Assembly (NCBI GenBank): GCA_964187785.1
Contig: OZ076415.1
Coordinates: 34,286,001 to 34,350,000 of the forward strand
Reading direction: 5' to 3'
Length of the DNA stretch: 64,000 nucleotides
Origin: Amphiscolops sp. MND2022
Taxonomy: Eukaryota
Positions 9,401 to 57,962 of the stretch are shown in pieces; the stretch's first letter is position 1; each line of letters opens with the position of its first letter. Made by a program: the position numbers and the translations under genes. The notes beneath the pieces are model-generated. The model was not told the DNA's origin. It made no database searches and worked only from the letters and a program-made list of their open reading frames with translations.

Positions 9401-12400
9401 GTGACGTGGGGTCAGTTTTCAGCTGTGGCGGAATGGTAGGCACGTTTGAGACGAACTTAGTTAGCTTAAAGCCACCTAATGAAAGCAAATTCACTAGATC
9501 CTTAGCTTTCCTGGTAGCTTCTTCTGCGGTTGGGCTGGATTCCAAGTAGTCATCCATGTAGAAGTTGTTGATGACGCTTTGGGCGGCTTCGGGGAAACTG
9601 TGATGCATTGTCGGTTGCTGTTCGTCTCAGGGCATGTGAGTCCTTGGATCCGAAGATGTGACGAACATACTGGAATACAGCAACTTCGGATGCTGGATCT
9701 TCGCGCCACAGAAAACGAAGTGAAGGTCTGTCGTCTGGAATGACACCGACTTGTAAAAACATTCCTCAATGTCAGCGGATACAGCGTGTGGATGTTGGCG
9801 GAATCGAATCAAAATGTGGATCAGATTCTGTAATAAAACTGGTCCGGTCAAAAGCAAGTTGTTTAAGGACTGACCTTGAAACTTGGCGGCGCCGTTCAAC
9901 ACACGTCGAAATTTGCCCGGTTTGTGGGGATGAACTACGGGGTGGTGCGGAAGGTACCACTCGCGGACTTCATTCACTTTGAAACAATCGCCTTTGTCGA
10001 CGTTCACAATGTACCCCTTTGAAAATTCGTCCTGAATAGTTTTGGAGTATCGCTCTTTCAAATCTGCGTCTTTCGCGAGACGGCGTTCTAGCGATATGAG
10101 CTGGACGAGTGCTGAAAAGTAATTGTTCGGTAAACTACTATCGTCCTTAGCCCAAAGCATACCAACCTGGTATCGGGACCCGTCGTGGTATGTCGTGTCG
10201 TCAAGTATCTTCTCCGCTCTCGCATCGGCAGCGGAACGGGAGTCTACCTGTTTGAATGCTCCGTATGATTCCATATCATACCAGCTACGGAGTTGGTTAG
10301 CTAGTTCTGAATCGACGTCTTTGTTAGTAGAAACAGCCTTGAAACATGTCGAATAAAATCCAGAAGTCGATGGAAGAGGTCCACTTAATACCCAGACCAA
10401 CGGTATACGGACGGCAACTGGAGTATTCTTACGGTCGGAATCGAAATACTCCAGCGGGCGGATAAAGTGAAACACGTCCTGACCTAGGATCATGTCGACG
10501 TCGGCATAGCTGTACTTCTGCAAAGATATTGGTTCCAAGTGAGGGTACTTTGTTTTCAGGTAGTTCACGTCGATCGTGTCGGTTCCCACATTCAGGTTTT
10601 CTCGGACGTATGGTTTGATGGTGAAAGGGGAGCAAGAGCCACTCGAATGAACCGGTGTCAACTTGAGCTCCACTATCTCCGTACTAATAACTTGATGGGA
10701 GTTAATCCCGTGTACAGTAAGTTTCGTCGGTACGCCTTGAACTTTCAATCTATTTGCCAATCTCGCAGAAATCCATGAATGGCTACAGGCTGAATCGCGC
10801 AGCGCTAAAACCTTTCCAGAGGTTGCTGTAGAATGCAATTCGACTTCCGGTATCTGCAGAAGACCCTCAACGTCCGTGACGGAAGGTAGGCCTGAGCTTG
10901 CTTCTAACTGCTCGTTTATCTTTGTTGCTCCGACACAGGTAGAAGATTCGGGATTTCGTGGTTTCGTTACTTGGTTCTTATTCGGAAAGATCCGGTCGGC
11001 CCCATGTAAAAACGTCTTGTGAGTGCTTCACATTTGCGGGGTTGCGGGCATTGACGGAAGGAATGATTGGCATTGAAACAAGAGAAACAAAGCTTGTTGT
11101 CGGTAACTAACTTTGCGCTCTCTGTGGGAGTTTTCTTACGGAACACCGGACATCTCCACAGAGGATGTTTCTCTTTACACGCCACACAATTTGGTAGTCT
11201 GTCGGACTTCGGTTTTGATGTGCTGTTTTGTTGGTTGTTTGATGTCGTTGCCGCGAACACTTTCGAAGTTGTCTTGGTTTTGTTGACACTTGGTTGGGGA
11301 TTTTCGTCCGACTTTGGTTTGCCCGATGCAGTCTTCATTCGTTCGTGAGCTTCAGTTTTATCTTTCAACCACTCATTGAAATCAATTAGTGTTGTTCGAT
11401 CTAAACTACGCTTAACGGTGTGCATCGACCAAGCCTCCTTCTTGTTTGGTGGGAGCTTTTGCACTGCTTGACCGAGTAGTGATGCACTTGACAGGTCTTG
11501 GTTGTATTTGAGCGATCGGAATACACCAACTAACGAACTTACAGTTGCAGAGTAGCTTATGATACTCTCGCTGTTGTGCATTTTCACCGGGGGTACATTT
11601 GCAAGTTTATCCAAGTATGCAGTCATTACTGCTTGAGGTTGTCCAAATTTGCGTTCAAGTGTTTTGAGAGCATCTTTGTACATGGCCCCACAGTAGGCAA
11701 ATTCGGCAATGGCGACCTTAGCTTTCCCGGTCACCAATGTTTTGAGATATGTCAGCTTGACATCATCTGTCAGAGGGGCAGAGTCAATGGGAGGACTTTT
11801 CGGATTGAGGACATTGATCGATGTACTCCCTTGCTTTCTGCAGTATTCTGTCATTTTCCACGGTGACATCATCTAACCACTTCTCTAGGCCGTCAGTTAT
11901 AGTTACTGGGTCGTTTGACTTCTTCGCGAGCTCCAACAGCTGCTCGTTCTTCGCAAAGGCTTTAGTCATTGTTTCGTTGCAATATGCAACTAATCGTTCA
12001 ACGCGAACGCGTCGTTCAGATTTGTTCACGGCATCGATGATATCTTTCTGGAACTTTTTCAACTCTGTTTCGATCTTTAAACGGCTGTCATGAAGCTTCT
12101 GAATCTTCTCTAACATGGGGTCGGTCATCGTTAATCGGAAATTGGTCAAACAACTTCAATCAAAAGTGGAACGGAATCTTTTTGGGCGTCAACCAAACTG
12201 TTAAGTCTGGACACAGTCCAAAACGATCAATATCCGAAAAAGGGGGCGTTTTGTTACCAGTAATGTAACGGTTGACAGTGGTGCTTCTGCACGAAGCGTG
12301 GAAGATTATTTTGTTTGGGTGAAAAGTAGTCTGGGACTACGAGGACGAAGACAAAGAACTTAAAGGTGCGCTCAAGGCGCTAACTCAGTGAGAAAGGTAG

Positions 12401-24400: not shown

Positions 24401-27400
24401 TCATCTTTTTGTGATTTTTTCAGTTAAGAAAAGTGCTTTTTAACATCTTCCCCCTTGAAGATTGTTACTGTATACAAAAATTATCGAAGTGCCACTGCGC
24501 CTCTTGTTTATATAAACCACAGTCACCTCTCAGTATTACAAGTTTCAAATGATTTTTTACTGTTTCAGAAAGAAAGTGAAACTCGGGAAACCAGCACGAA
24601 ACAAGATTCTACTTTCGTTGAAGATGAAAGTTTCACTGAAACTACAGGGAAAGAGGAGAACAAAGACATAAACTCTTCTGCAGTATCCACACAAGACACA
24701 GAGCAGTCAGTTCCAATTGAGAGAAAACTATTGGCGGTTGAATCTGCAATCGGTCTGTCTGGGAACTTGCATGATGTTTCAACCACTTCGGCCTCTGAAA
24801 CCCAAAATACATCAACAGTGTCAGCAGCAAACGAATCAGTGAGATATTGTTTCAATTTCATGCATTTTCACGCGAATTTGAAGAAAAAAACATCGATTGA
24901 ATCTATAGTACACGAAGTTGAGATCCAATAGATACCAATAAATACTTCGTTATAAATGAATATGTGAAGAAACATCTTACAGAAAATCTGGAAAAGTATT
25001 AAAAAGTATTTTAATTTTCAGACCTCGCAGCTTTCGCAACGAGATGATGACAAGGAAAGTTCAAAATCGGACTCAGAAACAGATCAAGAATCAGAAAATG
25101 TTAGTCTTCATCACAAAATTCTGAAAATATTTAATAAATTGATATCGTTTTATGAATTTAATTAGCTGAAAATTTTGCTTCTTTTTTGAATTTTTTGCAT
25201 CTCTCTAATTCTTTCAGTGTTCAGATACCACTAAGACATGTGGTTGATTTCAATGATAATTTTGTAGTATCTTCAATAATTTTTTAAAATATTTTCTGTA
25301 GAAGCAGTCAAACCGTGTTGAGCTCAAAGAGGCTCAGAAGTTGTCTGTGGTGCAGATGTCTTCCGAGAGCGAGATGAACGACAGTCAAACTGTCCCAGAG
25401 GAAGACAAGAGTCGCATCAGTGCAGCTGAAATCAGTGACATCACTGAAGAGGTTACAATGTCTTCAGATTCATTTGAATGCTTCAAGTTTTATTATATTC
25501 GAAATTAGTGTAGAGCTTGGTAATGGAAAAAGATGCAGACATTCGTGAAGCTTTGGCAGTCTATATATTTCCAAGGCATAAAAACCAAGACAACATGGCG
25601 GAACTGGCATCAATAGGGCTCAACATTTGCCAATTTAAGGTATCAGGTTGAAGATACTAGAACCGGTCTTGGCGTCCTTATAAAAGGAACTTTTAATTCA
25701 TATTGAGAGACTGATAGTTATTAAACAATTATAGTATAGCTTGGAGTTTCATTTTCACGAAAAACATGTCCGTTAAAGTGGGTTTGTGAAAAACATACAT
25801 TGAGTTCGAAATCTCGTAGAATCATGAAATCGGAGCTATGAGTGATAGACAGTGGGATGCAACGATTCGACAATTAAAATTTTGCTATCACTAATTTTGT
25901 CATCATAATGCATCATCGCTTTTCAGCTCGACGAAGACAAACCCGTCGTTAAAGCCGAAGTTTTGCCGGAAGACGAAATCAGCGAGAGTGCAACTTCTAG
26001 CGACACTGAAGTTGAACCAGAAATAAAAGATACAAATGAAATAACAACCAACGAGCCAACAACGAACGATAATTCAGATGAGACGACAGTGAAAACAGTG
26101 ACAATCAAACAAGGCGCGCCCGAGGAACCTAATCTGCAAACTCAAATGGAAACTTCCTACGAGAAATTGAACGGGACTTACGAAATAGAAGCTGATACGT
26201 CGCTATCCACAGACAATGACGCAATATCAGAAAATTCCGATTCGGACGCAGAACCAGCTGAGTCAATGGAAGAGAGCGAACCAGAATCTGATAGCATTGA
26301 ACCAGCCGAGCCCGCAGATTTGAATGGTTTTGTTGTGAGGTTTGATTCAACTGTGGAGTCGAGCCAGCTTTCGGTGATTAAAGAGGAATCTTCGATAGGC
26401 GAAAGTACCGAACAGACAACTTCTCATCATACTTCAATGGCTTCAATTACAGACGATAAAAGTTTAACTCATCTCGAAGACTTCACAGAGCATTACAAAG
26501 ATGAAGACCACGAGATTATCCAAGTTATGAAGGGCTGGAATGTCATGTCAGGAGCTGAACCAGCTGATGGAGTTTCCGACGATGACCTGATGGACTTCAT
26601 TCCTTGGCTTGAGGTCAAGCACGAAATGGAAAATATGGAAGAATTGGAACAGCCCCAAAAGGAGGACATGACACGATTCATGATCGTGGAAGACCCCATT
26701 GAGCCTGAGCATATGTTTAACATCGACTGTGGGGTTGCTTCTGGTGATGACGATAATGCCATTGAACTTTTTGAGCCTTTTGCGTATCCAGTTTTAGAGG
26801 ACGAAGACTTGCGGTTGCATAAAATACCTCCAAGGTTGCAAGCCATGGAGCTAGAGATACCAGTTGTAGCTGCACCTAGTAAACTCGAAAGCGAAATGTC
26901 TGGATTTAGCTCCGGAGAAGAAGATGCCAGCTCTATTGTGGATGACAATGAAACCAAACAAAACGAAGATAATATCAGCCAGAAGCCCGACAAAAAATCA
27001 TTGAGTAAAGAGTCCGATGAAAGTTTTGACGTTCCAAGCTTGGATGATGTTTTAAGAGCCCATTCAAGGAGTGAACTATATGACCCTCAAGCGATGAAAA
27101 CTGGGCAGCTTGAGCAATCTACAAAAGACAATACTTCTTCCCAAGAGGTTTCTGAAACGAAGAGTGAGCCAACTGAACAAAAAAGGGAAGAAGTCGAAAA
27201 TTCAACTCTAGAAGAATCAGCTTTGACCGCGGGTTTTGACGAAGAAAAAACTGATCAAGTTATTCCAGTTGTTTTTCCAGGAGCACAAATTGAGAATGAA
27301 CCAGATCAAGTTCATAGAAAAGAAGAATCATTACTTAAAACAGAAGAACAGAACTTAGAAGTTCCACCCAATGAAATCTCAGCTGACGATGTCTATGATG

Positions 27401-30400
27401 AGCTGCAGAGTTCCAAAATGTCAGAAAAGTCCTCGAGTGATGAACAGAGTTTTAAAGATCAAGTTCAACGACCACTTGTCAACAATCAAGAAACTCTGGA
27501 ATCACAAAACACGACAAATGAACAACCAGATGATTCTGAATCTGGTTCAGATCTTATACAACCCAAAGTAGATACGATCAATCAAACGGAAGAATCAAGA
27601 AATACTACTGCAGTCACTGAAACTTCCGACTCAGATTCGAGTGGGCAACTTATCAAAGCTGAAGAACCAAATCAAACCACGGAATCAGAATCAACTAAAG
27701 AGAAGTCTTCTAAAGTTGAAAATGCTGATACTACAGCGGAAACGTCCGGTGAGTTAAGGAATGATATTCCTGAGCGCGAAACTTCTGTTGATCAAATCAA
27801 TGAAGTTGTAGGCGAAAACGTATTAGTCGAGTCAGAACTGCAACCTGTAGAATCTGAGAAGCCAAACCTTTTGGTCGCATCGGAAATGGTTTACGATAAA
27901 CCTCAAATTGAACTTCAGAAAGATAACGAATCTGAAGATGAAGAATCAGACGAATCCAAGTCAGATCAGCAAGAAATTAAAGTTTCTGCTTCTGATGTTT
28001 TGCCTACTCATGAACGGGTAACTGACGCACGAAGCACAAATGAAGATTCGCAAGAAAACGAAACTACTATTTCAGAATCAGAAAAAGCTGGAGAAAATTC
28101 AGAAGCATCTTCGAAGAAATCTTCAACGTCATCTTCGGACTTTGAAAACCTGTCAAGTGATGCAAAAGACGAGCTCGTTCAAAAGAAACAAGAAGAGGCA
28201 GAAATTAAATTAGACGAACTGAATCCAATGGCCAAGCTGGAAAGTAGGAATGGCTTCGAAGTTGGAGGTGGCCTGGATAACTTGCCTCAAACTGACGATC
28301 TTCTGGAGATCCAGAGCGGATCCAGTTCAATGCTCCATGGAAAAGAAAAAGAGGAACTCAACGAGTCCGCTTCAGATTTTGTTCCTGAACTTGAAGCTTT
28401 TATTTCTAGCCCTATCGATAAAAGAGTTTTCGTCTTGGAAGCACCAGAAAATGCCAAAACTGAGAACCAGAATGAAAGTACTGCATCCACTGTTGAAGCA
28501 AGTTCAAAAACTGACCTCAAGCCAAAAGTTATTGACCCAACTACTGATGGTCAATCGGAATCCCAGGACGAGAGTGATGTCAAAGATGAAACTCTTAAAG
28601 AAGGGGAAAAACGTTCAAAGAAGTCAACGACAATGGAAGAATCAGAGTTGTTCGAAACTGCTTCTGAATCTGAAGATCTTTCAACAGTTTCGGATAACAG
28701 TAACTTGGTATCTTTTCATGGAGATGATCAAATTGAAAAGTTTGAACCTGTTCAAGTTCAAGAAACTAATGACTTTACTCTGGAGCAAGTACCGGTCATG
28801 TCTGATATAGGTTTATATCAGACAGAAGATGTAGCATCTAATAAAGATGACCGTTTCCATCCAGTTGAAAAGTCCGCCTTTAAAGATATGAGTTCAAGCT
28901 CAGAAACTGCAAAAGAACCAACGGAAGGTGAAATTGAAGCGAGCATTGACAAATCAGTCGCGTCTGAAAAATCAACAGAAGAGTCCAAAGTTGAACAAGA
29001 AACCCATCATGTTGAAGAAAAATCGAAAGCGAATGAGAGTTCTGCAAACGATCAAGACGTTGAGAATACAGAAGCTTCAAAAGACGCGGAATCAAGTACC
29101 ACTTCTGATCAAGACTCAAGTTATAGTGAAGCTGTCGAGAGACCAGAAGTCTTGACTCCTCAAGTTGGTCAACAAAAAGATGGAGTCAGCCAGGGAGAAA
29201 TGAATTCAACTCAAGTCAGCGAGAGCTCTGAAAATCTAGAATCAAGTTCGGCTACTGAATCGGAGAAGATTGAGCCTAGACTTAGTAAAGATAAGATCAG
29301 TTCTGTTGCTGACAGTAGTTTTGATCCGGAAGACAAGGTTGAAATTGCTGCAGCAGAGAAGCCCATTGATGCAACTGATGAAACGAAAACGCTTGACTCG
29401 AGTGCTTTAAATCAGCGAAGTGAGTTACATGACTCATCAATGGAGGAAAGTAGAAATGTTACCAAGGACAAAGACTCCAGTTTTGAGGGAAGCGAAAGCA
29501 AACCTGGCGGTATTAACGAGGATACAACTGGAGTTGACGAGACTTCGAACAAAATTGATTCAAGTGTTGTGGATGATGCCCAAACTGTCGAAACAAAAGT
29601 AGTTGAAGTTGAAATTGTAGATGTAACAGTTGATAGTCGAAAAGATGAAAGTTCGGAATCTCTTGAGGAGGCATTGGACAAGCAAGGCTCTCAAACACTT
29701 TCAGAAAATGATACATCAAAAGAAGCTGAAAGTAGTGCTGCTGAACTTGAAACAAAGCCCGAGGTAGAAGTATTGACAACACAAAATGAAAGTATCAACC
29801 AAACTTCTGACCTTTCCAAAAACGACATTTCTAACAAATCGAAAGATTCCGATCTTGATGAGTCAAAGGATGTCGAAGAAAACGCCCGGGAAACTTCAAG
29901 ACTGGATTCTGACATAACTGTTGAAGAAACTTCTGACCGGGATCAACCGGAGAACAAGAAAACTATAGAGGCGACTTCAACTCAGTTGGATTCCAGCGTT
30001 TCGTCCAATTCAGAAACAGGCGAGTACAAAGTTGCTTCTCAGAAAGATGATTCATCTGATTCAAATGACGACGAATCTGAAAAAGAAGCCGCATCCGCGA
30101 ACGAACAACTTGCTGCAAATGTAAGCTTGGAGGTGAAGAGCAATGAGGAAAACGCTCAAATTTCCATCGATGAAGCGGAAGACTTGATACAACCAGAGAG
30201 CGAACCTGAACTGCACGAGTACGAAGAGATCCTAGAAGCGGGAAGCAAGAAGTTTGCTGACATAATTATCAATGCAGATGTTGCTGAAGAAGAAAACATG
30301 CAAGTTCCGAGCTATGACATCAATGTTCAAAACCAAATGGAAGAAATTCAGGAAAAGTCTGATCATCTTCAGACCCGCCATGAAAGTGACGATGAATCAG

Positions 30401-33400
30401 TTTTATCTGATGAAAACAGCTCGACTTCTTCAAACGCAAATGAAGAAAAAAATGTTGTTTCTTTAGAGCAAGAGTTACTAAAAGCTGGATTCGTTACTCA
30501 AACTTCGGGAAATGACAGTGCTATGTCGCCAGAAAACGACAATGACAGCAATGCAAACGAGAAAGATCTTCTGGAGGAAGCACTAGACGATGATAAAGCT
30601 GAGTATGAAGTTCTTGTTGATGATGTTGTCAAATCTGAAAGCCATGACAACCAATTGGAAAGTGGGGTTTTGAACGCAGGTTTGAAACTTGAAGTTGTTG
30701 ACAAAGAAATTGATATTCCAAAGGACGTTTCTTCGACCGAAGATGATGCCAAAGTGAGCGAAGATATTGCCAATTTGTCGACAAACGACAAAAATTTGTC
30801 TGGATCGGAGGAAAAAGAAAGCGAAAAATCCCATGGCGAAAGCGGAAAAAGCTTGCAAAGCCCAGATGTTTCAAAGTCGAATGTTTCTGACGCTATAGAT
30901 GAAAGCCAGGATAACAAAACTGAAGATGAGCCATCAAAGTCTGATGACGTAAACCAGCTAAATAAGTTGCAAGCAGAGCCCGTTTCCAAGAGCGCAAACA
31001 CGACAATTGAGACCGAATCTGCTGTTGACAAAGAAAGCGATCTGGATGTTTCTATGGAGATAAGCCGAAATGTTGGGCCGGGTGAAAACCCATTGGCGCA
31101 ACTGAATGAACCGTTTGAAGGTCCATCAGCTGTTTCAGAAAGGAGGGAGTCTTTTGGATCTTCTGATGAATCCAAGAGAGACCAAAAGTCTGAGGCCAGT
31201 GAACAAGCGCCAGTGATCAAGCAGGCAGAAAGCTCATTCAGTGACACAGAATCTGAGTCAGAAGGAAATTCTGAAGCAGAAAAAGAAGAAAACGTGAACA
31301 GATCGCATTCTTCTGTTGAACAAAGTGAAGAACCAGTTGAAGAAGCGATTGTCGCTGAAAATGATATCAAAGATGATTTGATGGAAGTTCCGGCCGCTAC
31401 TGTTGATGCTGAAATGAACAAATCAGGAAATGAATCAACTGTATCTGATGCCGATGAAGGAAAGAATGAAGTCTCGTCTATTCTAATCGCAGCGATAGAT
31501 AAAGAAAATGCACCTTCAGATCGTTCAGATGAAAGTTCACGCAGTGACAATGAAGAAGAAGAACCGGAAAAGCCAACTGTGCCATTCGTTGAAGAGATGA
31601 GAGCACCACCTCAAGGTTCGAAGGACGAAGCGGACTCTTCGTTTGAAGCGTCTAAAAACGAAGAAGAAAAAGAAGGCGAGGAAGAAGAAATGAACGAATC
31701 TGATAGCTCTGACAACTCTAAAAACGAAGAAAAGTATGAAGTGACACCTTCAAAATCACAAATACCAGATTTTAACGTCGATCACTTTCTACTTGTCTCA
31801 AAAGTTGATACTGATCAAGTGACAACATCCCAGCATCCAAGTTTGGATGATATAACAAAAAAAGGCGAAGATCAAATAATAATCCCAGAATATTTTGTCG
31901 ATGTTTTTGCTGAAAACGCTGAAGAACAGGATGATTGGGAAATTGTTCAGGAAGATCTCGGAAGCCCAGATCCTAAATTGATCATACCCGCAAAAGATTA
32001 TTTGAAAGGGGTCTGTGACAATACTCCAGAGGAAGAAATTTCAGCCATTCAATTCGAAAACGATGTCGATGAGTCATTCCCATTCACTTATGACAAACTT
32101 GCTGAGGTGGAAGCTCCTTCGCGAAACGAAAGTTTGGATGAAAAGGTGCAAGTGGCTGAAAGGGCAGAGACTTTAGATTCTTCTGCCTCAAAGAAGCAGG
32201 ACGAAGCAGCAATTAAGGTTGATGACGATGATTCGGAAAACTTGTCAACTTATACTGAAAGTTCGACAACAGCTGAGTCTTCGGCAAATGTTTCTGGAGC
32301 CAATTTGTTGGAGGAGGAAATCAGAAAAAATGGCGAATCCAATTTGCAGGCAGCGCCAGTAGATTCAGATGTTCGTACCTCTGAAATGAAACAAGACGTG
32401 GATGAACTTCAGGGAAAAACATACGAAGAGATTCATCAAGTTGAAAGAGAAGAGAAGGAGGGAGAAACTGTTGATGATGTAGAAATTAACGACAATGTGG
32501 AAAAAGAGGAAGCATCTCCGGAGATTTATAAAGTTGAGAAAGAAACACCCTCTGATGACTCAGACAAGAGTTTAAGTCGTGAAGATTCCGTTGAAGAAGA
32601 GCTACCACCGGTTGAAAAACAAGAAGTAAAGGATGATAGCGATGATGAAGAAGAAAAAGGAGAAAAAGAAAAAGTTGATGTTGAGGCCAGTAAAGAGTCA
32701 CTTGTAGAAATTTCTTCAAAAGACTCGGACGAGGAAGAAGATCAAGATGCAGAAAACGAAGAATCAGAGGATGATAGAAAGGATGACCGTGGTGAAAAAG
32801 AATTTCAGCTACCGGATAGCGAAAGCGAAACAGAGCCAATTGTTGACCAAAGCGATATCTCCGAAAAAATTGATGTTGAAAAAGACATTTCGAAAGATTC
32901 TGTAGCCACAGTCGGAAGCGATCATTCTGGTCCTGCTGCTATTGATAATGTTGAACTATCAGCTACTCTTAAATCACCAGAAAATTATGCGAAAATTCCT
33001 CAAGAAAAAGAGAATAGTGACAGTGAATCAGATAATTCTGACACTGAAACCTCAAAGAGTGACGGTCAAGAAAAAGAAGCTACCCAAAATGTCACTGATG
33101 TTTCATCAAAACAGTCAGCTGCAAACGAAACAAGGGAGTTGATTGAAGCCATAGGAGATTCAGAAGACCCATTACAAACAGAACTCGTTGATGAAATCGA
33201 AGACAAACCGCCCAATGATTTATACAGAATGGATTCGAAAGAAAATGATGCATCTAATGATGATCTATCACAAGATGTTGAGGCCATGAAAAGTGAGGAA
33301 AAAGTAGATTTGATACCTGATCAAACAGGAGAAGACAGAACACCACAAGTTGTTGAGTCAGAAAGCGAAAACGAATTGACTGAAAAGGCAGCTGTTGACA

Positions 33401-36400
33401 ACGCCGTCGGGAAACCTGGAAAAGAAATGTCGACACACGATAACGAAGATGAAGATGTAAAAACTTCTACTGCAAGAGAAGAAGAAAAGTTCGTCGAAGA
33501 TACCAAGCATGATTCTGAGAGCGAAAGTTCTTCAGCTTCAGATGAAGAATCGGAAAAAGTTGAAGAAAAAGAAGACTACGAGACAAACGTTTCAAAGGAT
33601 GAAGATGCCCAACAGGAAAATGATGCCGAGACAAGTGAAATTCAAAGAGACTTCGATCGTAATAGAAGCGATATCTCGTTTGGTAAAGCTGAAGTTGAAA
33701 AACAAATTTCAAAGGATTCATTGGAATCGAGTAGTGTCGAATCCGATTCTAGAAATGAGAGCGAATCTGATGACAATGAAGATGAAAAACCAGCCAACGT
33801 GAACCAACTGAATGAAGAAAGTTCCGTTGAAGAAGCGATGCAACAAATTGGGAAAGAAAAGGAGGAGGAAAGAAAAGAAGAATCAGACGAAGAAGAAGAA
33901 GAAGAAGAAGAAGAAGAAGAAGAAGAAAAAGAATTAGACGAAGAAGAAGAAGAAGAAGAAGAAGAAGAAGAAGGAAAAGGGCAAGACAAAAAAGAAGAAG
34001 ATTACGAAAAAATGAAACCTAGTGAACAAAAACCGAGTGAATCATCAAGTTCAGAAAGTTCAGAGGAAGATGAAAAATTCATAGTGACTCAGTCGACGCC
34101 TAATATTCCAGATTTTGACGTAGACCTTTTCTTGACGGATCCGAAATCGGTGTCTGGAAAATCACAGGCCGCTTCATCAATCGCATACGATGCGAAAAAG
34201 TCTGATAAAGAGCAGTTGATCATTCCTGAATTCTTTGTTGATGTGTTTGCTGAAAATGCTGAAGAACAAGATGACTGGGTTATAGTCCAGGAAAATCTTG
34301 GAATCCCAGATCCAGGACTGATCATACCCGCTAAAGACTGGTCAAAAGAGGGTCACGAAGATAATCCAGAGGACAAAATTTCCGCCATTCAATTTGAAGA
34401 GGACGTTGATAATTCATTCCCATTCAGTTACGACAAATTGGCAGAACTGGAGAAGCTTTCTCCCCGTCCAAGTATTATTGAGAAAGCAGTCGAAGAGAAA
34501 GAACCGAATAATTTGGAGACCTCAGTTTCAAAGAAAGAAAGCAAAGCAGCCAGTGAAATTGATCACGATGATCTGGAGAATCTTTCGACATATTCCGAAG
34601 ACACTTCTGAAGCTGCGTCCTCGAAAAATACTTCAGGCGCCAATTTATTTGAAGATGAAATCGAAAATGTTGAAAATTCGAACAGCCTTCAAGCTGCATT
34701 ATCGTCGGTCTACAATAGAAGTTTATTTGATCCGGTAATTGATGAGTCTGGTACAATTTCGGTTAAACCATCCGAAATTAATAAACCCCAGTTGCCCACT
34801 GAATACGCTGAAACTCATCCAGAAGGCAAAGTAGAAGCTGAGATGTTGTCGAATTCTATGCGTCTCTTTGAGGTTTCTCCAACCAATGACACTGCTTTGC
34901 CGCTAGAGATCCCACTAGACAATTATGTACATGAAAAATCAGAAAAAAGAAAAGCTAGTTCGCATAGCGAAACTCTAAGCGATGATGAATCGGTACCAAC
35001 GGAACGAAATGAAGTTCCGCCAATGAGTGAAACGATCCGGTGTTTCATGGAAGCCAAGGGGTTCCATGGTACTTTGGAAAGTGATTCGAACATTGAACCC
35101 GATGACAGTCTAGCTGAGGAAAATACAAGTAATGACAGAAACAACATCGAGGGAAAAGATGATACACAAGTTTCGAAAGATTCGTTGGAATCAAATAGCA
35201 ATGAATCAGACGCGGATAGTGTTGAGAATGTGAAACAGTCAGAAGTTGTGCTAAGAAGTGATCATTCTGACAGTCAGAGTGATGAAAAGACGAAAGATAG
35301 ACGTTCCAGTGACTCAAACGAGTCTCAAAGCCAAGATTCCGACAGTGAAAAACAAAATGAAGACCTAAATCAGGAAACGGCAATTCAAGCACCGCAACCG
35401 GAAACTGTCAATGAGGTCGATAATGCATCTGGTAAAAGCGATGATTTTGAAAAACCGCCTATCGATTTCTACGAAAGTGAAAACAATTTTAATACAGAAA
35501 ATGAATCGGGATTTTCAATGCCTTCTAAGACTAAGCATTTCCAGCCGAAAAGTAGTGCTAATGTCAAACCATGGGAGTACCATTTCTCATCGAAAGGATC
35601 ACACGACACAGAGGAACCCCCTGAATCTAAATCCGATATACCTCAAAAATCTGGAACAGACGAGCTTTCAACAGCCAAAATTGAGGAACAACTTTCTAAT
35701 CTTGAAAAATTGGCAATGTATCCTCAACCTTTGACTGCGCCTGCTGAGTTTGAGGATGAAGCCAATAATGATAAAGATGTAGAAGAAGAGTTAAAAGATT
35801 CAGTAGTCGATGACATTCCGATTAATGCTGAAAGTCCTGTCCATCAGACGCTGGAATCGGCTCCAGCATTCTTAAGGACTTCGAGTCAAGAAAAATCATC
35901 AACTGAGGTTGAGAATGGAGTGATTGATTCTGAATCCAAAATAGTCGAAGACATTCTAAGCACTAACAATGACTGGACTCAACCTCTGGAATTAGCACCA
36001 GACTTCTTACCAACTACTACAAGTCAAGAAAAGCCAGAGATGACCCTTTTCGACTGGAGAAACTTCGATCTCCCAGTTCCATCAACAGATCCAGACTTGG
36101 ACTTCAATTTCAAAACCCCTGACAAGGAAAGCCCAAGCTTTGCAACTGGTATGACTCTTGATATGCCTTCTGAGAGAATACCAGAGAAACCAAATTCGGT
36201 TCTAAATCTGGTGGACCAGTTTGAAAAAGAGATTTCAGATCAACAAGTGAGCAAGCACCCGACTTTAAGGCCCGTTGTGAAGAAAAAACCGACCTTTTTG
36301 CCAATGGAGCCCACGTCCCAAGATGATGTTGTGTCAATGGAAGACAATGAATTGTCACAAAATCTCATGTCAACTCCCCAATTTGACCCTGAAAGTCTAC

Positions 36401-39400
36401 CTCAATTACCAAACGTGTATGAGATTGCGGAAAAGGTCATGAACAAATCAAAAGCCAATGAAACAGAGCACAGACCTTTAAGGCAGTCCCAGCTTTTCAC
36501 AGTGAGTCATTCATACACTCATAAAAATTTCCTCAACGTTTGGTTGAAAATTCAGGCTTCCTTGGATAATTAAATGTGCTAAAAGTTCATCAATATAAAC
36601 CCTTCACATTGATTGTTTTCCAAACCTCTCATGGAATTTCAATTTCAATTGAAAACCTTTCACGGAAGGAAATTTTAAAAGAATGACTTTTCACAAAAGT
36701 GTTTTTCATTCAAACGCAATCAATCCTCAAAGCTGCAAAGTTTCAAGAAATGTTTGTCATTCTTTGCTTTATACCTTGAAGATCCTCTAATGTAGTTCGC
36801 GTTAATTACATTCTTTTTAAAGTCATTCATTGTTTCCAGAAAATATCTGTGGGCGAAGAGCTGAACATACCGACTCCCATCAAAAAAGAGCTGAAACCGA
36901 GGTCTCCTCCTAAGTGCTTCGATGGCAACTGCGTCATGCCAGTTTACGACCAGCTGAGTGAGATGCTACAAGAAGCACGAGTGCATTTGGAATTGATCGA
37001 AAAGCAGGTAACTTTTAGGTTTTTCCTATGGGTTGTAAGAATTAGTTAGTCGCGAAGAAAGTCAGCTATCCTATTGTACCAGAAAATTCAAACCTTCATT
37101 CCACAGTTTAGGAAAGGACCTTACCTATACAATTTTTTGGTGGTCAGTCTGCAAAATTTGAATTTACTTCATGGAAAAACCGTTCAAAAATTCATTTAGC
37201 CAAAAACTTCAAAATTGAAGTAGCAATTTTTGTGTTGAAGAACAAACATGATTAGTTGGTCAAATTTGAAAGTTTGAAAAATTCATAGTTTTAAAACAAT
37301 TTCACCAGCTAAGGAGTGGTATATTTTCCACTTTGCTGCACTTCAGTATCATGCATACTTGAAATGCTGAAAAAATTTCACCAAAAGTTGAAAAATTGAA
37401 ACGAAGATTTCATAGAACTACGAAAAAATTTACTTGCAAAAAAGTTTAGTTTAGCGTTCAAGAAATGTTCAAAACTTGTACGAAGTTCAAAATTTGCACA
37501 AAAGTTGCTATGTGACGCTTTTACATTTTGGCATTCCGTTGATCAAAAAAGGATATTTTATTGAGTGCAAGGTCAGGTTAACTCTCACGCTTATTGTAGT
37601 AAACTCATAGCCAGATCGTATCAATCATGGGCCTCATACACGATTCCTGCGAATTTCCTGTACAGAATATAATAATGAATGGTAGTTATGTTGCATAATT
37701 CATTACAATAAATTTTTCCACGCGCCCTTTGTTTTTGCAAAAGCGTTTCTAGTAACTTCGGGCATAACATTGATTAATCATAAATCATGTTATCGCACTG
37801 AAAAATCCCGAAATTGTTGCATTCATCTGAAGTTTTTATTCAAAATTTGGTAGTTGAGAATACGGCCCTGTCACATGCAATTTTTTAGCATTAGTAAACA
37901 ATTTCTAGGACTTCGGGATTGATACCAGCTTTTCTAATTAATTTGCTCACGAATCGTACAACTACTTTACAAATTATTAGTTTGAATTAGGTTTGGAAAT
38001 GCAAAAAATTTTTTATGGAGTTGCTGCGTGCGAGGTGGCCACTGTATACGAACTTTATCATGCGTGTCGTATTTCGATTTTACTACGACTTCACGCCAAT
38101 CGTCGTACGTATCGTGGCACGATTGCGACTAAGCTCACGACGTACTACAACTTCCATGGAATGTCAACCCTGGTATGCTACGAGCCTATTTTAATTTTCG
38201 ATTTATAGAAAAAAAACCTCCTTTTTGGCTATGAAAGAGGTTATGGCAAAATGCGAAAGATGAAAATATTCCAAAGTTGTGGTCTACATTTTATGAAATT
38301 CCATGGATCTAAGATTTATTTGTTTCAGCTTGAAAGACCACTAGAGTACACGACAATTTCATTCTCGTTGCCCGAAATTCATCTACCTCCTTACGACTTC
38401 CGTGACTCCTCTGTAAGTTTGAATACATTTGATAGATATGAATTTCACTGTTGCTGTGCTTCCCATATATTCTCTCCCCAAAAAACATCGGAAAAAATTT
38501 TTGATTCACGTTTTTTGAACCCTGGCCTCTCGGCTCAAAGGGGCTTCATTTTCAATAACAAACTTGAACAAGAGAACGACGTAGAGTCTCGAACCCAGGA
38601 CCTCTTGGGTTGGAGTTATCCAGAGATAACTATACATTAATGGGCTCATTAAACTCAATCTTCCGTGAACAACTTATGGAATTATTGAAATTATGGAATT
38701 GTTTTAAATTATATTAATAAATGCAGTTCCCCAATTGGAAGGTCATTAGGTGATCACATCAGAATTGGAAAAATTCCAGTCCCCATCGCAGATAATTGCC
38801 AAAATCTGAACTTATCGAAGGGTTTTTGCTTCCCGTGTATAAAATTTGGACCCTTCATATTCTTGACACTAACTTCTTCCATTGAAGACACTCTTATGTG
38901 AACTTTTAAAAGGTATAATACAGTGTTTTTTAAAGACATTTTTATGAAATAGATTTGAGGCAAGCGAAAAGTTTTTTTTTCAACTCGAAATGTTTTGAGT
39001 GTTAAACTGACTTTAGCAATAGTTTTTTGAGGTGAATTACATTGGGTCGTGTCTCTAAGTATAAGTATTCAAGCGTCGGTATATGTGATTAACGTCTTCA
39101 TATAGAAAGTTTCATTTTTGTAGACAAAGAATTTGGAGAAATTGTTACAAGAAGTGGAGGAATTGGAGACTAAATGTCGCAATTACGAGCAGCACCACGA
39201 TGACTCATTTCGATCATCGACATCTAGTGGAGAAATGAGCGAGGAACACAGCAATACACTTGATAAGGTTTTTTGACACATCTTGTTCACGTTCCCATTG
39301 TTGAAGGTAACCGATTGGTCATAGTTAATAGTAGCATCATTCATTTCATCATTGGCTGGAAACCTTTAGACAAAACCTCAGGTTTGAGAGCATCGGATTC

Positions 39401-53107: not shown

Positions 53108-54770
53108 TGATTTTCAGTTCGAGAAGCTGAATCCGCGAGACTAAGCTATTAAACCTTAATTAGTTTGTCTACTACGAAGAACCATTCCTAATGACACCAC
53201 TGTACTATAGTACCAAAACTTCAACGAAAGCTTCGAATGAATTTATAATTTTTAGGCAATTTCAAGTTACTTATATGATTTCTATCAATCAGTGTTATGC
53301 ACAAAATTACAAAAAAATATCCTACATTATTGACAGGTTTCATAGTTTACCCAACGAAGTATCCTGAAAACGCGCATTTCGTAATAGAATATTACGCTGT
53401 GAGCATCAACTTAGAGTAGGTTCGAAATTTGTATGGAGCAGCAATAATTTTGAAGATGAGTAATTCACATTGTTACCCTGGAGTCCTATAATTTTCTAGG
53501 AATTTTCTCTCCAAAGATTGAGAAGCTCAAGCGATCAGGAAGAAATGAAGTTTTCCTTCAGTATCGTTTTGATTTTTCGATTTTTTGATATCTTAAAATT
53601 TTTTTTTATCTTTGTAAGATTCGATTTTGGAGTAATGATACATCGTAGTAAAATGTACATAAGAGGGTTTACCAAAATTTGTGAATAATTTGATTCTCCG
53701 ACAATTTTTAATCTCTCTGGTTTTAACAGTTGCACTCAAACTTTTGAACAGACTGCGAATAATTAATTATATGCGACGTTGTTGTTTTTTTTAAAAAAAT
53801 CTGGCATTACGCCCTCGTCACTGAAAAACCGATGGTAGCTTGTGATTTTCGTTCCGCTCTATTTAATTAACTGCATGTCGCGTTTCATCACAGCTGACTT
53901 AACTTTATTGTCTTTCATCTTTTCAGTCGAAATAACTCACTTTAATCTAACGAGATAGCTTCTGTATTACTTTTTTCATGACACTCAAATTTTCTTCGTT
54001 TCAGAGGTAGCTAATCTGAGTCAAATCTACTGTCAATGCTCCTGATCATCACAGAACCAATCAATTCAGAGATAAAATTATCCTTCATTTCGAATGGTGG
54101 AAAATGTCAATTTCGCCGGATACATTTGCTATATATTCAATCAACAGATAATATCATTTTTAGCATTTTTAGTGATTGTCATACATGTTTCTATTTTGTT
54201 TCTACTGAAATTGAATCTATATGCGGACAGTGAATTCATTTTATTTTCCTAAACTTTTTCACTCTACTTAGGTAGGAGCTGTTAAAATGAAAGTTTGACA
54301 AATTCCAGTTTGAATCTGAGTGATTCGCCTATCAAGACTGTGGAGCACTGATTGACTTTACCGAATGTTCGATTCATGGTAGTCGTGTATTTACGCAACT
54401 AAGTTACTATGTAGTCGAACTCGTAAAACACGATGGCCATTGCTACGATGGTGACGTTGATTTTTTACTGATGCAAAGATTAGTTGATTAGTTACTAGGT
54501 AGCAGGTAGTAGACTCGACCAATAATGGAGCCGAAGTGTTAGCGCGATTGAAAATCCGGTTGCACGAAAAATGGGCTAACAATCAGGGTTTTGAAAAGGA
54601 ACATGTGAAGTACCAATTTATCTTCCGTTCTTACGAGTAAAGGTTGAAAAAAATTGAAGGTGAGGGTTTCATCACAGTTTTCATGAGCAAAATGAGTTAT
54701 GAAGATGCGTTTTAAGATCTTCTGCAATTGGATAAAAAAAGGGTGACACCACATCAAAGAAATGGTTTGA

Positions 54771-56879
54771 TCATTGGTGAATAACAATTTGACGAAACAT
54801 CTCGGCGAGGGTTGCGTTCGATATTCCGGCCGTTAGATGTTCAGGTTTGGAGATCAAATCAATCGAACATATTATGGTTTCTCTTGTGAATCTAGGCAAA
54901 CAGCCAAAGAGAAATCCATCAGCGGACATGCACGCAGATGAACCATAAAAATTACGATCACTGTGAATTGCGTAATCGATGAATGAATAATCTACCCACT
55001 GTAATTCTTTCAGATAATTATATGTATCATAATCCATGTCTGCAAGATCTTCTAACGCCTCTATGAACCATCTATGAGTCATTCCATTCATGATTAATTC
55101 ATTGTCTGCACTCAAAAAAGTTGAAGATTTAGATGAACCATCTAAAAACATGTAAGCACGTCTCAAACCCAAGTGGAAAAACCAGGCATCTTCAAAACTC
55201 AGACTTGCCAAACTAATGGAGCTTTCGATAAAGTTTTTGACGTACAGCAGTTCTTGGTATGTTCTAGGGTAGAAAAGCACCGAGCTTTGAGAACGGCAAA
55301 AGTCCATTTGTTCAGTCAAATTCAATCTTTTTTCGACACTCTTCTCGATAAAATAACACCTTTTGTATGGAACGCTCACTTTCCCATACTTTGCGGCACA
55401 CAGTTCCCTTGGCTTCAGCATTTGAGGCAGAAGGTCTTGACAATTGGCGATGGCTCTCAGTCTACCCGGGTTCATTTCAAACTGCATCGACTTCGAAATC
55501 TTGTAAGGGGCTTCTTTTAAATTGATGGTTTCGAACTGAACCACAATAGATCCTAGAAACGAAGTGCAAAAGCACACTATAACAGCAGCTGCTAGAAAAA
55601 CTATAAAATATCTAAACTTTGCTTTCTCCACAATCTTAGATTTGTTTGTTTTGCAATCTTTCGACTTCCTACTAGTAGGGTTATGGGTTTTCGGCAAACG
55701 AGATCCTCCTTTCCTGGTCATGAATAAAACCTTGAAAATCTTGACCAGAAAGGCACTGTGAGGTTTCAAAACGGCAAGAAGAATTATAGGATTCAAATGT
55801 GAATAAAGCAGAGACAATGACTGTCTGATGACGTAATAAATCAAGTTTCTCTCGTTTTCTTCTATTCCATCAGAGCGTAAGCTGATACCAACAAACAGAA
55901 GTGCATAGTATGGAATCCAGGTGCTTAGCCACAACAGCCAACTGATTGCAAATGCGATTGTCAAACTTCTATTGCGAGACTGGTTGCGATTTCGTTTCAG
56001 TAAAACATGGGCCACTTTGATGTAAAGACCAGCAGATAGTAATCCAGGAACTACCAAGCACACCAAGCAATCAAGGAACAGTCTCAAACTATGTCTCACT
56101 TGGAAGCTAGCGCAATTATGCAGAAACATATGGATCCCACCCACGACTTCTAAAACTGATTCGATCGGAGACTTTTTGGAAGCTACCCTTGGGTATATCA
56201 TTAACCCCATGAACAAAAAATTGACCCCCATAGCTAGGAAAGGGTAAATAATTATCACAGCTGCAATAATGAACAGGACTTTTCTCGTCAAAATGTTGTC
56301 CGTGGGGTAGCACACGTTACAGAAGCGAATGAAAGCGCATGCGGTTACGCAAATCCCTGTAGAATATTCGTTCAACATGTTTTTCAAAACGGTTGTGATG
56401 CAAACTATATACTGATCGGATTGCGTGAATAAAGTCGGAAGAATTAGGTCAATTGTATTGAACGATTTACTTATATCCTGTTTTACGAAGGAATAGTGGT
56501 AAAGTTCGTAAATTATGTTACTAATACCAGGACCCAGGATATCTATGAAAGCTTGGAAAATGATAGGAAAATTAGAAAGACTTCTACTTTTTTTGTCCGA
56601 CAGAAGAGCAGCGACAAGAATAGTGTTGAAAATAGTACAAACAATACTGCCAGCAATTGTTATAATCTTGGATATCCAAAGATTGGCAATTTGGCTGTAT
56701 TGCACAATGAATTCAGGTTTTTCTCCATAATCCAACCGGACTGAAACCAATTGTAATAAAAATAAAGATCCGGGTCTGGTGTCGTTTCTTGTATAAAATT
56801 GTAGAAAGAGTCTATTGGGACAAGATACATCTTGACTGCTTTGATGGAAAATGTCTGAAACATACAAAAACTGTTGCAA
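54771..56879 (-). CDS. Class A (rhodopsin-like) GPCR with an extra eighth hydrophobic helix and a C-terminal C-type-lectin-like domain; true start unresolved
   Basis: Seven helices with N in TM1 (IFN), D in TM2 (QAFID), IRF..VCYP for DRY, P..Y in TM5, TWIP in TM6, LNPII in TM7; then FRYFIVFLAAAVIVCFCTSFLGSIVV; then RCYF, FC, WFFHLG, ACM, GC, IIC. Confidence 0.8.
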   Translation of the reverse strand: MQQFLYVSDIFHQSSQDVSCPNRLFLQFYTRNDTRPGSLFLLQLVSVRLDYGEKPEFIVQYSQIANLWISKIITIAGSIVCTIFNTILVAALLSDKKSRSLSNFPIIFQAFIDILGPGISNIIYELYHYSFVKQDISKSFNTIDLILPTLFTQSDQYIVCITTVLKNMLNEYSTGICVTACAFIRFCNVCYPTDNILTRKVLFIIAAVIIIYPFLAMGVNFLFMGLMIYPRVASKKSPIESVLEVVGGIHMFLHNCASFQVRHSLRLFLDCLVCLVVPGLLSAGLYIKVAHVLLKRNRNQSRNRSLTIAFAISWLLWLSTWIPYYALLFVGISLRSDGIEENERNLIYYVIRQSLSLLYSHLNPIILLAVLKPHSAFLVKIFKVLFMTRKGGSRLPKTHNPTSRKSKDCKTNKSKIVEKAKFRYFIVFLAAAVIVCFCTSFLGSIVVQFETINLKEAPYKISKSMQFEMNPGRLRAIANCQDLLPQMLKPRELCAAKYGKVSVPYKRCYFIEKSVEKRLNLTEQMDFCRSQSSVLFYPRTYQELLYVKNFIESSISLASLSFEDAWFFHLGLRRAYMFLDGSSKSSTFLSADNELIMNGMTHRWFIEALEDLADMDYDTYNYLKELQWVDYSFIDYAIHSDRNFYGSSACMSADGFLFGCLPRFTRETIICSIDLISKPEHLTAGISNATLAEMFRQIVIHQ

Positions 56880-57162
56880 CTAGTAAGAGTTAAAGTTGAT
56901 TCTAGTGGTACATCTTTGGGTTTTCTAGTGAAAAGTGCCTGACTATTAAAATGGCTAGTTTTTTTCGTCACACCAAACAGCTCACCCTGTATGCATCACT
57001 TTTTGTGCATTATGCACTTTCACCATAAGTATCATGAAATTCACCATAAAATACTTGATTTTGAACGTCCAATCCGTTTGAACAATATCAGTTCAGAAGA
57101 GGGTGCATGAGCAGAAGAGAAAGAACACCCCCGAAGCAAAAAGTTACTGGCAGAGTACCCCC

Positions 57163-57962
57163 CATTAGAGTGCATAGGCAAGCTTAATTTGCTCAAAGCA
57201 CAATTTTGTGCTTTCAATACCTCGGATTCCACGACCAAACCTTCAACCGTGCAAAATTGGCAAATTACGTCAAAAGTCCCGGATTCCACGGATTTTGTCG
57301 TGGATTCCAGTAACAAATGCTAAGCTGTACGCGCTGTCGACATGCCGCTGTGCCCCGGATTCCACAAAAACGTAAGTTTTGCTAAACGAACCAATCAGAT
57401 TGCAGAAATTATAAATTTCCTGGATTCCACGACTTTATGCTTGACGCGACACCTGGCATCTCTTCTTGAATTAAATTCAAGTGAAAGAGTGAACAAACAT
57501 AATTTCATGCACTACTTTTCGTAAATTGATTCAAAATGATTCAGACTACCACACAAATGTTCGTGTTTTACGAAGTTCAGTACCAGTTTTGATCAAAGCT
57601 GCCACAACATCACAATCTGTCATTATTTGATGACATGCTGCAATTTTGGTACCAGTCATGAATATCTCTATTCGTACTTTGGGATTTTTCGTGTGAATCA
57701 AAACAATTTCCATTGATATAAAATTGATTTATTTCAAGTCCTTCTGCCTTTCCAAGAATGATCACTCAAATTCTGAGAGCAGCGGCAAACGCGTCATTAT
57801 AGTAGCAGTATTGGCGTAGAATGCAGGATAAGCACTGTCGTGGAATCCAAGACACGCTCAACATCAAAGTGAAATTTTGTCCTGGATTCCACGACTTTTC
57901 TCAATTTTCGTGTCCCGGATTCCACGAAAAGCAGCAAAATAGCTTGCCTGTGCACTGTAATG
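57163..57962. mobile_element. Longer (800 bp) member of the same MITE family, opposite orientation
   Basis: Same TIRs; both terminal about 110-170 bp blocks align with 40320-40544; multiple GGATTCCAC motifs. Confidence 0.75.

Follow-up and report, generated by a model that had tools for sequence, protein, structure and literature searches.

The 64,000-nucleotide stretch analysed here (hereafter the window; contig OZ076415.1 of Amphiscolops sp. MND2022, assembly GCA_964187785.1, positions 34,286,001 to 34,350,000) carries on its minus strand, at window positions 54771-56879, a single open frame of 702 codons, in which no stop separates a seven-transmembrane (7TM) receptor part from a tail that is predicted to form a CTLD (C-type lectin-like domain). 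A frame of this length in DNA of 38% G+C is far beyond chance (~1e-19 by our own estimate, assuming ~6% stop codons per position). The main coding exon, which is also the last exon of the gene, encodes an N-terminal ectodomain, a 7TM core, a basic linker, an eighth transmembrane helix (TM8), a stalk, the CTLD and a C-terminal tail, and the frame ends with a stop codon at 54771-54773; the segment 54771-55610 corresponds exactly to codons 424-702 plus this stop codon. The preliminary description of this DNA had read from one frame a complete 7TM, a basic linker, a 24-residue helix (aa 424-447) and a Cys-patterned domain, all of which are present as quoted when judged by frame, hydropathy and cysteines. 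The word 'complete' applies to the seven-helix core, which is whole, and not to the coding sequence, which lacks a start codon, there being no in-frame ATG before aa 168 of the 702-codon frame.

The N-terminal half of the frame has the class A (rhodopsin-like) G-protein-coupled receptor (GPCR) fold together with the microswitch residues of that class. Kyte-Doolittle analysis and inspection locate seven hydrophobic helices between approximately aa 68 and 375, within which the motifs IFNTIL (N1.50), FIDIL (D2.50), AFIRF (R3.50), VVPGLL (P5.50), TWIPYY (W6.48-x-P) and NPIILL (N7.49-P7.50) are found, while the D of DRY and the Y of NPxxY are replaced in the window copy. Cys 160 and Cys 256 represent the cysteine pair for the disulfide between TM3 and the second extracellular loop (ECL2). 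In an alignment of 38 sequences (A2), R3.50, P5.50, W6.48 with P6.50, N7.49-P7.50 and the TM3/ECL2 cysteines are invariant or near-invariant, the conserved columns including R176, P269, N294, W312 and N354 in the numbering of the window copy. The full-length AlphaFold2 model exhibits seven helices plus helix 8, with a predicted local distance difference test score (pLDDT) of 80-95 in the helices, and a Foldseek search with it placed nothing but class A GPCRs in the first 50 ranks (probability 1.00; target-based TM-score 0.49-0.74), among them NK1R, SSTR3, CXCR1/2, M4, A2A and beta1. Furthermore, five related proteins surpass the gathering score of 30.5 bits of Pfam 7tm_1 (PF00001), i.e., P0002 (48.1 bits), P0089 (45.6), P0101 (42.6), L017 (42.1) and P0093 (40.3), and the window copy matches its paralogues in phmmer comparisons at 1e-42 to 1e-62. 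The sole Pfam match of the window protein itself, DUF5313, was dismissed as a chance hit.

The tail downstream of TM8 comprises ~255 residues. A CTLD fold, on which the preliminary description had staked its reading of this tail, is what the structural comparisons returned: for the AlphaFold2 model of aa 473-702 (pLDDT 76.8, predicted TM-score (pTM) 0.73), Foldseek listed no other fold than that of CTLDs among its best 50 matches (E 1e-5 to 2e-4; 199 matches at E<=1e-3), and VIA-align gave Z scores of 13.0-14.9 and a root-mean-square deviation of mostly 2.2-2.5 Å over 120-128 residues of CTLDs that are 126-137 residues long, with 537 chains at Z>=8. We consider this evidence, obtained with a predicted structure, decisive for the fold. 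It is accompanied by the long-form CTLD pattern C0...C0'(RCYF)...C1 on helix alpha1...WFxHLG...F-S-x-D...C2...C3...C4(xCSxDF), the cysteines of the window copy being located at aa 494 (C0), 508 (C0'), 528 (C1), 650 (C2), 660 (C3) and 671 (C4), and its WIGL-type motif reading WFFHLGL (family consensus WFIHLGF). Six cysteines represent the modal count (40 of the 76 near-complete family domains); C22, C36 and C56 of the tail alignment never vary, and complete members also possess the three cysteines nearest the C-terminus, with the pairing itself assumed from the pattern.

Sequence comparisons point in the same direction at lower significance. A profile of 29 paralogue tails searched against the PDB returned CD94, CD69 and CLEC2D as its best matches (E about 0.003-0.008), besides CLEC5A and tetranectin (E 0.003-0.13 overall), and the identity of the tail to type II CTLD receptors is 12-21%. 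Pfam Lectin_C (PF00059, gathering score 22.6 bits) gave no match to the window tail and sub-threshold matches to five of the 29 paralogue tails (best E 0.0048), and Xlink appeared in three of the 29. When searched against a library of 1.84 billion proteins, the tail profile matched 118 proteins, the weakest of which include the multi-CTLD proteins P0114 and P0116 (E about 1e-4; Pfam Lectin_C scores of 161 and 284 bits, respectively), and 92 of the 100 nearest clusters in a language-model atlas belong to the Lectin_C set.

The long loop of the CTLD, in which true lectins bind Ca2+ and sugar, is occupied in the window copy by an acidic, Tyr-rich insert modelled as low-confidence helices, which stands where paralogues carry (DY)n runs. 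This region varies in length among the paralogues and is filled in many of them by (DY)n or (YD)n runs. Runs of at least three repeats were observed in nine of the 76 domains (for example L024:2524-3309, L018:2614-3336 and L027:2573-3328), the insert of the window copy being a shorter, degenerate version; these acidic repeats may serve as sites of tyrosine sulfation. The Ca2+ site 2 motifs of sugar-binding CTLDs are essentially absent from the 76 domains (WND in none, QPD in none, EPN in one) and the window copy has none of them. For this reason the glycan or microbe sensing proposed in the preliminary description is left without sequence support and is not retained here. By motif, the family domain would be a CTLD and not a lectin, and it appears to resemble the non-sugar-binding CTLDs of type II receptors more closely than those of collectins.

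Of the 40 residues that connect the 7TM-profile match with TM8 (aa 384-423), 13 are K/R and two are D/E, and this segment is modelled by AlphaFold2 as disorder following a short helix after TM7. The eighth hydrophobic peak, at aa 425-443, reaches a Kyte-Doolittle 19-residue mean of 2.57, and a hydrophobic helix is present in 63 of the 69 library relatives with enough upstream sequence, at a median of 46 aa before the CTLD. The 20 residues before TM8 contain on average 5.97 K+R, those after it 2.53, this bias being found in 34 of 38 family members. The stalk is modelled as a low-confidence helical extension of TM8, and an N-x-S/T sequon lies on helix alpha1 in 49 of the 76 domains (NLT at aa 520-522 in the window copy). 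The charge bias around TM8, the cysteine pattern and the conserved sequon, together with a class A core in which TM7 ends, and helix 8 lies, on the cytoplasmic side, indicate that the eighth helix is oriented N-in/C-out and that the CTLD is extracellular, disulfide-bonded and glycosylated; an outward-facing lectin-like domain, as had been suggested, is thus the most likely arrangement. The predicted layout of basic segment, N-in anchor helix, stalk and C-terminal extracellular long-form CTLD is that of a type II CTLD receptor, in agreement with the earlier notion of a type II lectin appended to a class A receptor. The coordinates of all these features are given in Table 1.

Table 1. Predicted parts of the receptor gene in the window (window positions; aa, residue numbers in the 702-codon frame).
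Feature	Position	Strand	Basis
Main coding exon, last exon	54771..56854	-	Uninterrupted frame; indel-free contigs of four runs; exon start set by conserved acceptor
3' splice acceptor with pyrimidine tract TTTTTGTATGTTTCAG, intron phase 1	56855..56872	-	Homologous position conserved in paralogues
Extracellular N-terminal segment, aa 10-67, with NDT sequon and LDY motif	56679..56852	-	Aligns in frame with paralogue N-termini (NSSFVP...TVDY)
Class A (rhodopsin-like) 7TM core, aa 68-375	55755..56678	-	Hydropathy, conserved columns, AlphaFold2 helices, Foldseek, Pfam scores of paralogues
Helix 8 and K/R-rich cytoplasmic linker, aa 376-423	55611..55754	-	Charge count, model
Eighth transmembrane helix, aa 424-447, predicted N-in/C-out	55539..55610	-	Hydropathy, charge bias, relatives
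Stalk between TM8 and CTLD, aa 448-493	55401..55538	-	14% identity, dN/dS 0.5
Long-form C-type lectin-like domain, aa 494-675	54855..55400	-	AlphaFold2 model, Foldseek, VIA-align, PDB profile matches, atlas
Acidic Tyr-rich insert at the long-loop position of the CTLD, aa 607-638, EALEDLADMDYDTYNYLKELQWVDYSFIDYAI	54966..55061	-	Alignment A1
C-terminal tail after the CTLD, aa 676-702, with NAT sequon (low-confidence helix in the model)	54774..54854	-	Not conserved among paralogues

The same architecture recurs across the genome. A six-frame search of the 1.07-Gb genome returned at least 147 matches to the tail, many of them lying within frames 550-720 codons long and many being clustered in tandem (C9 43.28-43.78 Mb and 12.7-13.8 Mb, C13 16.0 and 19.2-19.4 Mb, C10 26.3-26.6 Mb, C11 28.7-29.0 Mb), and some members are visibly broken by stops. 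Each of the 32 paralogue frames retrieved combines, within a single frame, matches to the 7TM part and to the tail (32/32), and of five further loci with short tail-carrying frames, four possess a 7TM piece directly upstream on the same strand. The exception, L045 (G000:C7:51092500-51102499), has two near-identical CTLD exon pieces, at 2295-2750(-) and 5159-5614(-), that are separated by 2.86 kb, and the 10 kb retrieved around them contain no 7TM match; these may be duplicated or transposon-captured gene fragments. A tandem pair at L044 (G000:C11:29002500-29012499) consists of frames 3464-4309(-) and 2263-3018(-) and of a copy at 6332-7210(-) and 5164-5919(-), the 7TM exon and the TM8+CTLD exon being ~450 bp apart in each, which places an intron inside the cytoplasmic linker, unlike the situation in the window copy. 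This linker intron of the L044 subfamily fits an acquisition of TM8, stalk and CTLD as a module. Among the genome loci examined, no stand-alone type II CTLD member with its own start was found.

To assess selection, dN/dS values (the ratio of nonsynonymous to synonymous substitution rates) were calculated for 11 paralogue pairs by the Nei-Gojobori method, giving medians of 0.22 and 0.27 for the CTLD core segments, 0.33 for the 7TM part, 0.44 for the long loop, 0.50 for the stalk, 0.53 for TM8, 0.66 for the linker and 0.80 for the N-terminus. As the values of the CTLD core do not exceed that of the 7TM part, the tail is evidently translated, and under a constraint no weaker than that on the receptor core. 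On average, paralogues are 36% identical to the window copy in the CTLD core, 33% in the 7TM part and 14% in the N-terminal segment.

The closest paralogues of the window copy are about 33-36% identical to it in the conserved parts, and no other family member occurs within the 64-kb window; by this degree of divergence it is an isolated, old lineage, and its intact frame, with the hallmark residues of both domains retained, argues for a functional rather than a decaying gene. A word-indexed homologue search with the whole protein returned only the public gene call P0001 and one relative. Two ENA assemblies contain relatives, namely ERZ25074608, in which the sequence of the window itself is likewise present, and ERZ26859043. 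The best match of P0002/L033 (687 aa, from ERZ25074608) in the genome of the window is 51% identical, with DNA identity of <=85% over short stretches, so that this sequence derives either from a region missing from the chromosome-level assembly or from a second related genome in the sample. L043 (G000:C2:14134195-14139003; frame 1333-3309(+)) is a divergent subfamily member of 659 aa with a canonical ERY motif (AVERYLAVC), and constitutes the closest match (42%) to P0093 from ERZ26859043.

The start of the gene requires separate consideration. Just inside the start of the frame, the DNA reads TTTTTGTATGTTTCAG followed by AC, which is a canonical-looking 3' splice site with the junction at 56855/56854. 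Nine paralogues (L010, L014, L017, L018, L020, L023, L024, L025 and L027) share the pyrimidine tract with TTTCAG, at the homologous position and with matching codon phase, just ahead of the N-x-S/T and (T)VDY motifs. Judged by this shared acceptor, the exon must begin at 56854, with the start codon in a putative upstream exon; the missing ATG is thereby explained, since the acceptor is common to intact paralogues. Members of other subfamilies (L007, L015, L016, L019, L022 and L030) begin with MG(S/A)xTT within the same exon. The public gene call P0001 (535 aa, 100% identical to the frame) begins at aa 168, because no earlier in-frame ATG is available, and thereby loses TM1-TM2. As an ATG is present in the neighbouring frame (MYLVPIDSF...), a frameshift in the 5' part, caused by an error of 1 bp in the A5 run near 56712, was considered; it was rejected, as the main frame aligns with the paralogue N-termini (N-x-S/T...VDY), the contigs are free of indels and the conserved acceptor explains the lack of an ATG. 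These Logan contigs, from four DNA-type runs, cover 54600-56934 or further with <=2 substitutions and no indel; the four runs represent one sample, probably the same individual as the assembly, and the contigs are therefore not independent support. The sole variant within the frame, G>A at 55233, affects a third codon position (AAC to AAT, Asn) and is synonymous by codon reading.

Upstream of the exon lies an element of ~800 bp at 57163-57962 with 22-nt inverted ends (CATTAGAGTGCATAGGCAAGCT, 91% complementary), with more repeat sequence at 56950-57040. The summed contig depth of this element amounts to thousands to hundreds of thousands and many contigs stop at 57161-57164; it looks like a high-copy transposon resembling a miniature inverted-repeat transposable element (MITE).

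Taken together, we think it probable that the gene encodes an eight-pass receptor in which a class A core is combined with a type II CTLD module, the extracellular CTLD serving as a recognition module that modulates the 7TM core in cis. The cytoplasmic C-terminus of the class A core would be fused to the basic segment, the N-in/C-out anchor, the stalk and the long-form CTLD, and the CTLD would thus be presented outside the cell, adjoining the receptor's own extracellular face. There it could act as a tethered recognition module, whose variable, acidic, Tyr-rich loop would bind non-canonical ligands, such as proteins, comparably to the ligand binding of NK-type CTLDs in vertebrates. Occupancy or position of the CTLD may then modulate the 7TM core in cis, and the core would presumably signal through G proteins. 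Given that the family is large, arranged in tandem clusters and made up mostly of single-exon genes, it may constitute a diversified sensory or recognition repertoire, either chemosensory or immune. A more far-reaching version, which we put forward tentatively and hold to be possible but less probable, is that of a new receptor class in which the acidic, possibly sulfated loop of the CTLD would act as a tethered ligand or as a ligand-capturing lid of the 7TM pocket, with hundreds of genes forming a combinatorial repertoire.

Several points weigh against the eight-pass receptor with cis-acting CTLD. The full-length model has a pTM of 0.52 and pLDDT values below 50 for model aa 372-415 and 433-478; TM8, stalk and CTLD are not confidently placed relative to the 7TM bundle, so that cis-modulation lacks structural support and no docking is claimed. 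Searched alone against Pfam, the window protein matches neither 7tm_1 nor Lectin_C at E<10. The alignment by hhalign of the tail profile with one true CTLD is weak (10% probability, E 0.003, 30 columns), and with a best PDB E-value of 0.003 the case for the CTLD would be marginal from sequence alone; as the Lectin_C threshold is not reached and the hhalign result is weak, homology to CTLDs rests on the fold together with the motif pattern. That the exon is spliced to another upstream, that the gene is expressed and that both halves are translated into a single chain is inferred from the genomic sequence, and the high-copy transposon, ~300 bp upstream of the exon, could have cut off the first exon.

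Among the alternatives, the one that survives best accepts the architecture as real and assigns to the CTLD a role in dimerisation, trafficking or surface anchoring, the ligands being bound in the 7TM pocket. No part of the protein is better conserved than the CTLD core, which suits a structural rather than a diversifying role, and the proteins that the tail profile matches best, CD94, CD69 and CLEC2D, are dimeric type II receptors; NK-type CTLDs in general form dimers. The absence of sugar-binding motifs from the family CTLDs is also in keeping with such a role. It is less easily reconciled with the long loop, the usual ligand surface, which is variable in length and sequence and carries lineage-specific acidic, Tyr-rich inserts. 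On balance we judge a purely structural role to be rather unlikely, though it deserves to be taken seriously.

Clearly less probable is the possibility that the window copy is a dead or dying gene, its last exon having been orphaned by a transposon insertion while the frame has not yet decayed. Such a fate would be consistent with the lack of a start codon, with the MITE-like element and the additional repeat immediately upstream, and with the presence in the family of members broken by stops. However, the lineage is old, its closest paralogues being only about 30-35% identical, and yet all 702 codons have stayed open with the hallmark residues kept, the acceptor shared with intact paralogues accounts for the missing ATG, and the only variant within the frame is synonymous.

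The tail could further be imagined as a true Ca2+-dependent carbohydrate-recognition domain (CRD) that couples the binding of glycans or microbes to G-protein signalling, as the closest structural matches of the tail model include collectin-11, langerin, CD23 and mannose-receptor CRD4. In invertebrates, CTLD proteins form large, expanded families that serve pattern recognition (PMC7308585), which would be in line with such a function. Yet a similar fold does not prove sugar binding, the sugar-site loop of the window copy is replaced by the acidic Tyr-rich insert, and the motif counts given above run counter to a canonical site throughout the family; we therefore consider a true lectin very unlikely, while a non-canonical sugar site may exist in the family CTLD. 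The weakest alternative, that the locus yields two products, a GPCR and a stand-alone type II CTLD receptor made through an internal promoter or start (e.g., M387) or through proteolysis of the linker, draws on the complete type II layout of TM8, stalk and CTLD, on the linker intron that marks a separable module in the L044 subfamily and on the in-frame Met at aa 387, but is scarcely credible given that M387 is not conserved in paralogues, that the halves are never parted by a stop or frame change in the 32 frames, that the 7TM segment lies directly upstream in four of the five loci with short tail frames and that the loci examined yielded no member standing alone with a start of its own.

Elsewhere in the window, a frame of 3536 codons is open on the plus strand at 25963-36573, where the sequence is strongly skewed towards purines (AT skew as high as 0.36, GC skew as high as 0.24). 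On the minus strand at 7773-11872, where the G+C content is the highest of the window (46-47%), four open frames of 227-403 codons follow one another and may represent a mobile element.

GPCRs are generally composed of seven helices with the N-terminus outside and the C-terminus inside the cell, and additional sensing domains are normally N-terminal. The receptor described here shares with class A GPCRs (PF00001) the seven-helix core, R3.50, P5.50, W6.48-x-P, N7.49-P, the TM3-ECL2 cysteines and helix 8, but differs in that its C-terminus would re-cross the membrane via an eighth helix and end in a folded extracellular domain; moreover, the window copy is too divergent for the Pfam model and its DRY motif is reduced to (F/L)R(F/Y). 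Its C-terminal module resembles the vertebrate type II CTLD receptors (CD94/NKG2, CD69, CLEC2D/LLT1, NKR-P1, LOX-1 and CD23), which provide its best profile matches and are among its best fold matches, in the succession of cytoplasmic segment, N-in anchor, stalk and C-terminal long-form CTLD and in that sugar-binding motifs are mostly missing. Unlike those stand-alone, single-pass proteins, however, the module is continuous with a GPCR in all 32 frames, lacks ITIM motifs (immunoreceptor tyrosine-based inhibitory motifs) and ITAM-adaptor motifs (of the corresponding activating type), and has an acidic Tyr-rich insert in its long loop.

Regulation of a helical bundle by an ectodomain is known from adhesion GPCRs, LGRs and polycystin-1. 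Adhesion GPCRs and polycystin-1 also combine a lectin-fold ectodomain with a multi-pass signalling core and have the ectodomain regulate the bundle in cis; theirs, however, is an N-terminal lectin domain associated with a 7tm_2 or 11-TM polycystin core and a GAIN/GPS site, whereas here the core is of the 7tm_1 type and the domain is C-terminal, needing an extra helix to reach the outside. In agreement with this distinction, Pfam searches of the family members identified 7tm_1 as the only core, with no 7tm_2 and no GAIN/GPS. In number and organization, with hundreds of fast-evolving, tandem and mostly single-exon genes per genome, the family is comparable to the lineage-expanded, mostly intronless class A families of invertebrates, such as the sea-urchin 'surreal' GPCRs and the chemoreceptor expansions of molluscs and nematodes, for none of which, to our knowledge, an eighth helix followed by an ectodomain at the C-terminus has been reported. 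A full-text literature search, with most subscription journals outside its reach, retrieved no account of a 7tm_1 receptor that carries a CTLD at its C-terminus. While 7tm_1 receptors and the CTLD superfamily are both well known, what appears to be new is a class A core whose C-terminus is predicted to re-cross the membrane in order to display a CTLD.

Genes of this kind are easily mis-annotated, either by truncation at an internal Met, as in the 535-aa P0001, or by being split in two. If the proposed architecture is correct, a large family under selection would connect an ectodomain with a class A core by a different route, and would unite within a single chain type II CTLD receptors and GPCRs, which are separate receptor types in vertebrates. 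It would then also offer a tractable system for understanding how an ectodomain tethered beside TM7 gates a GPCR.

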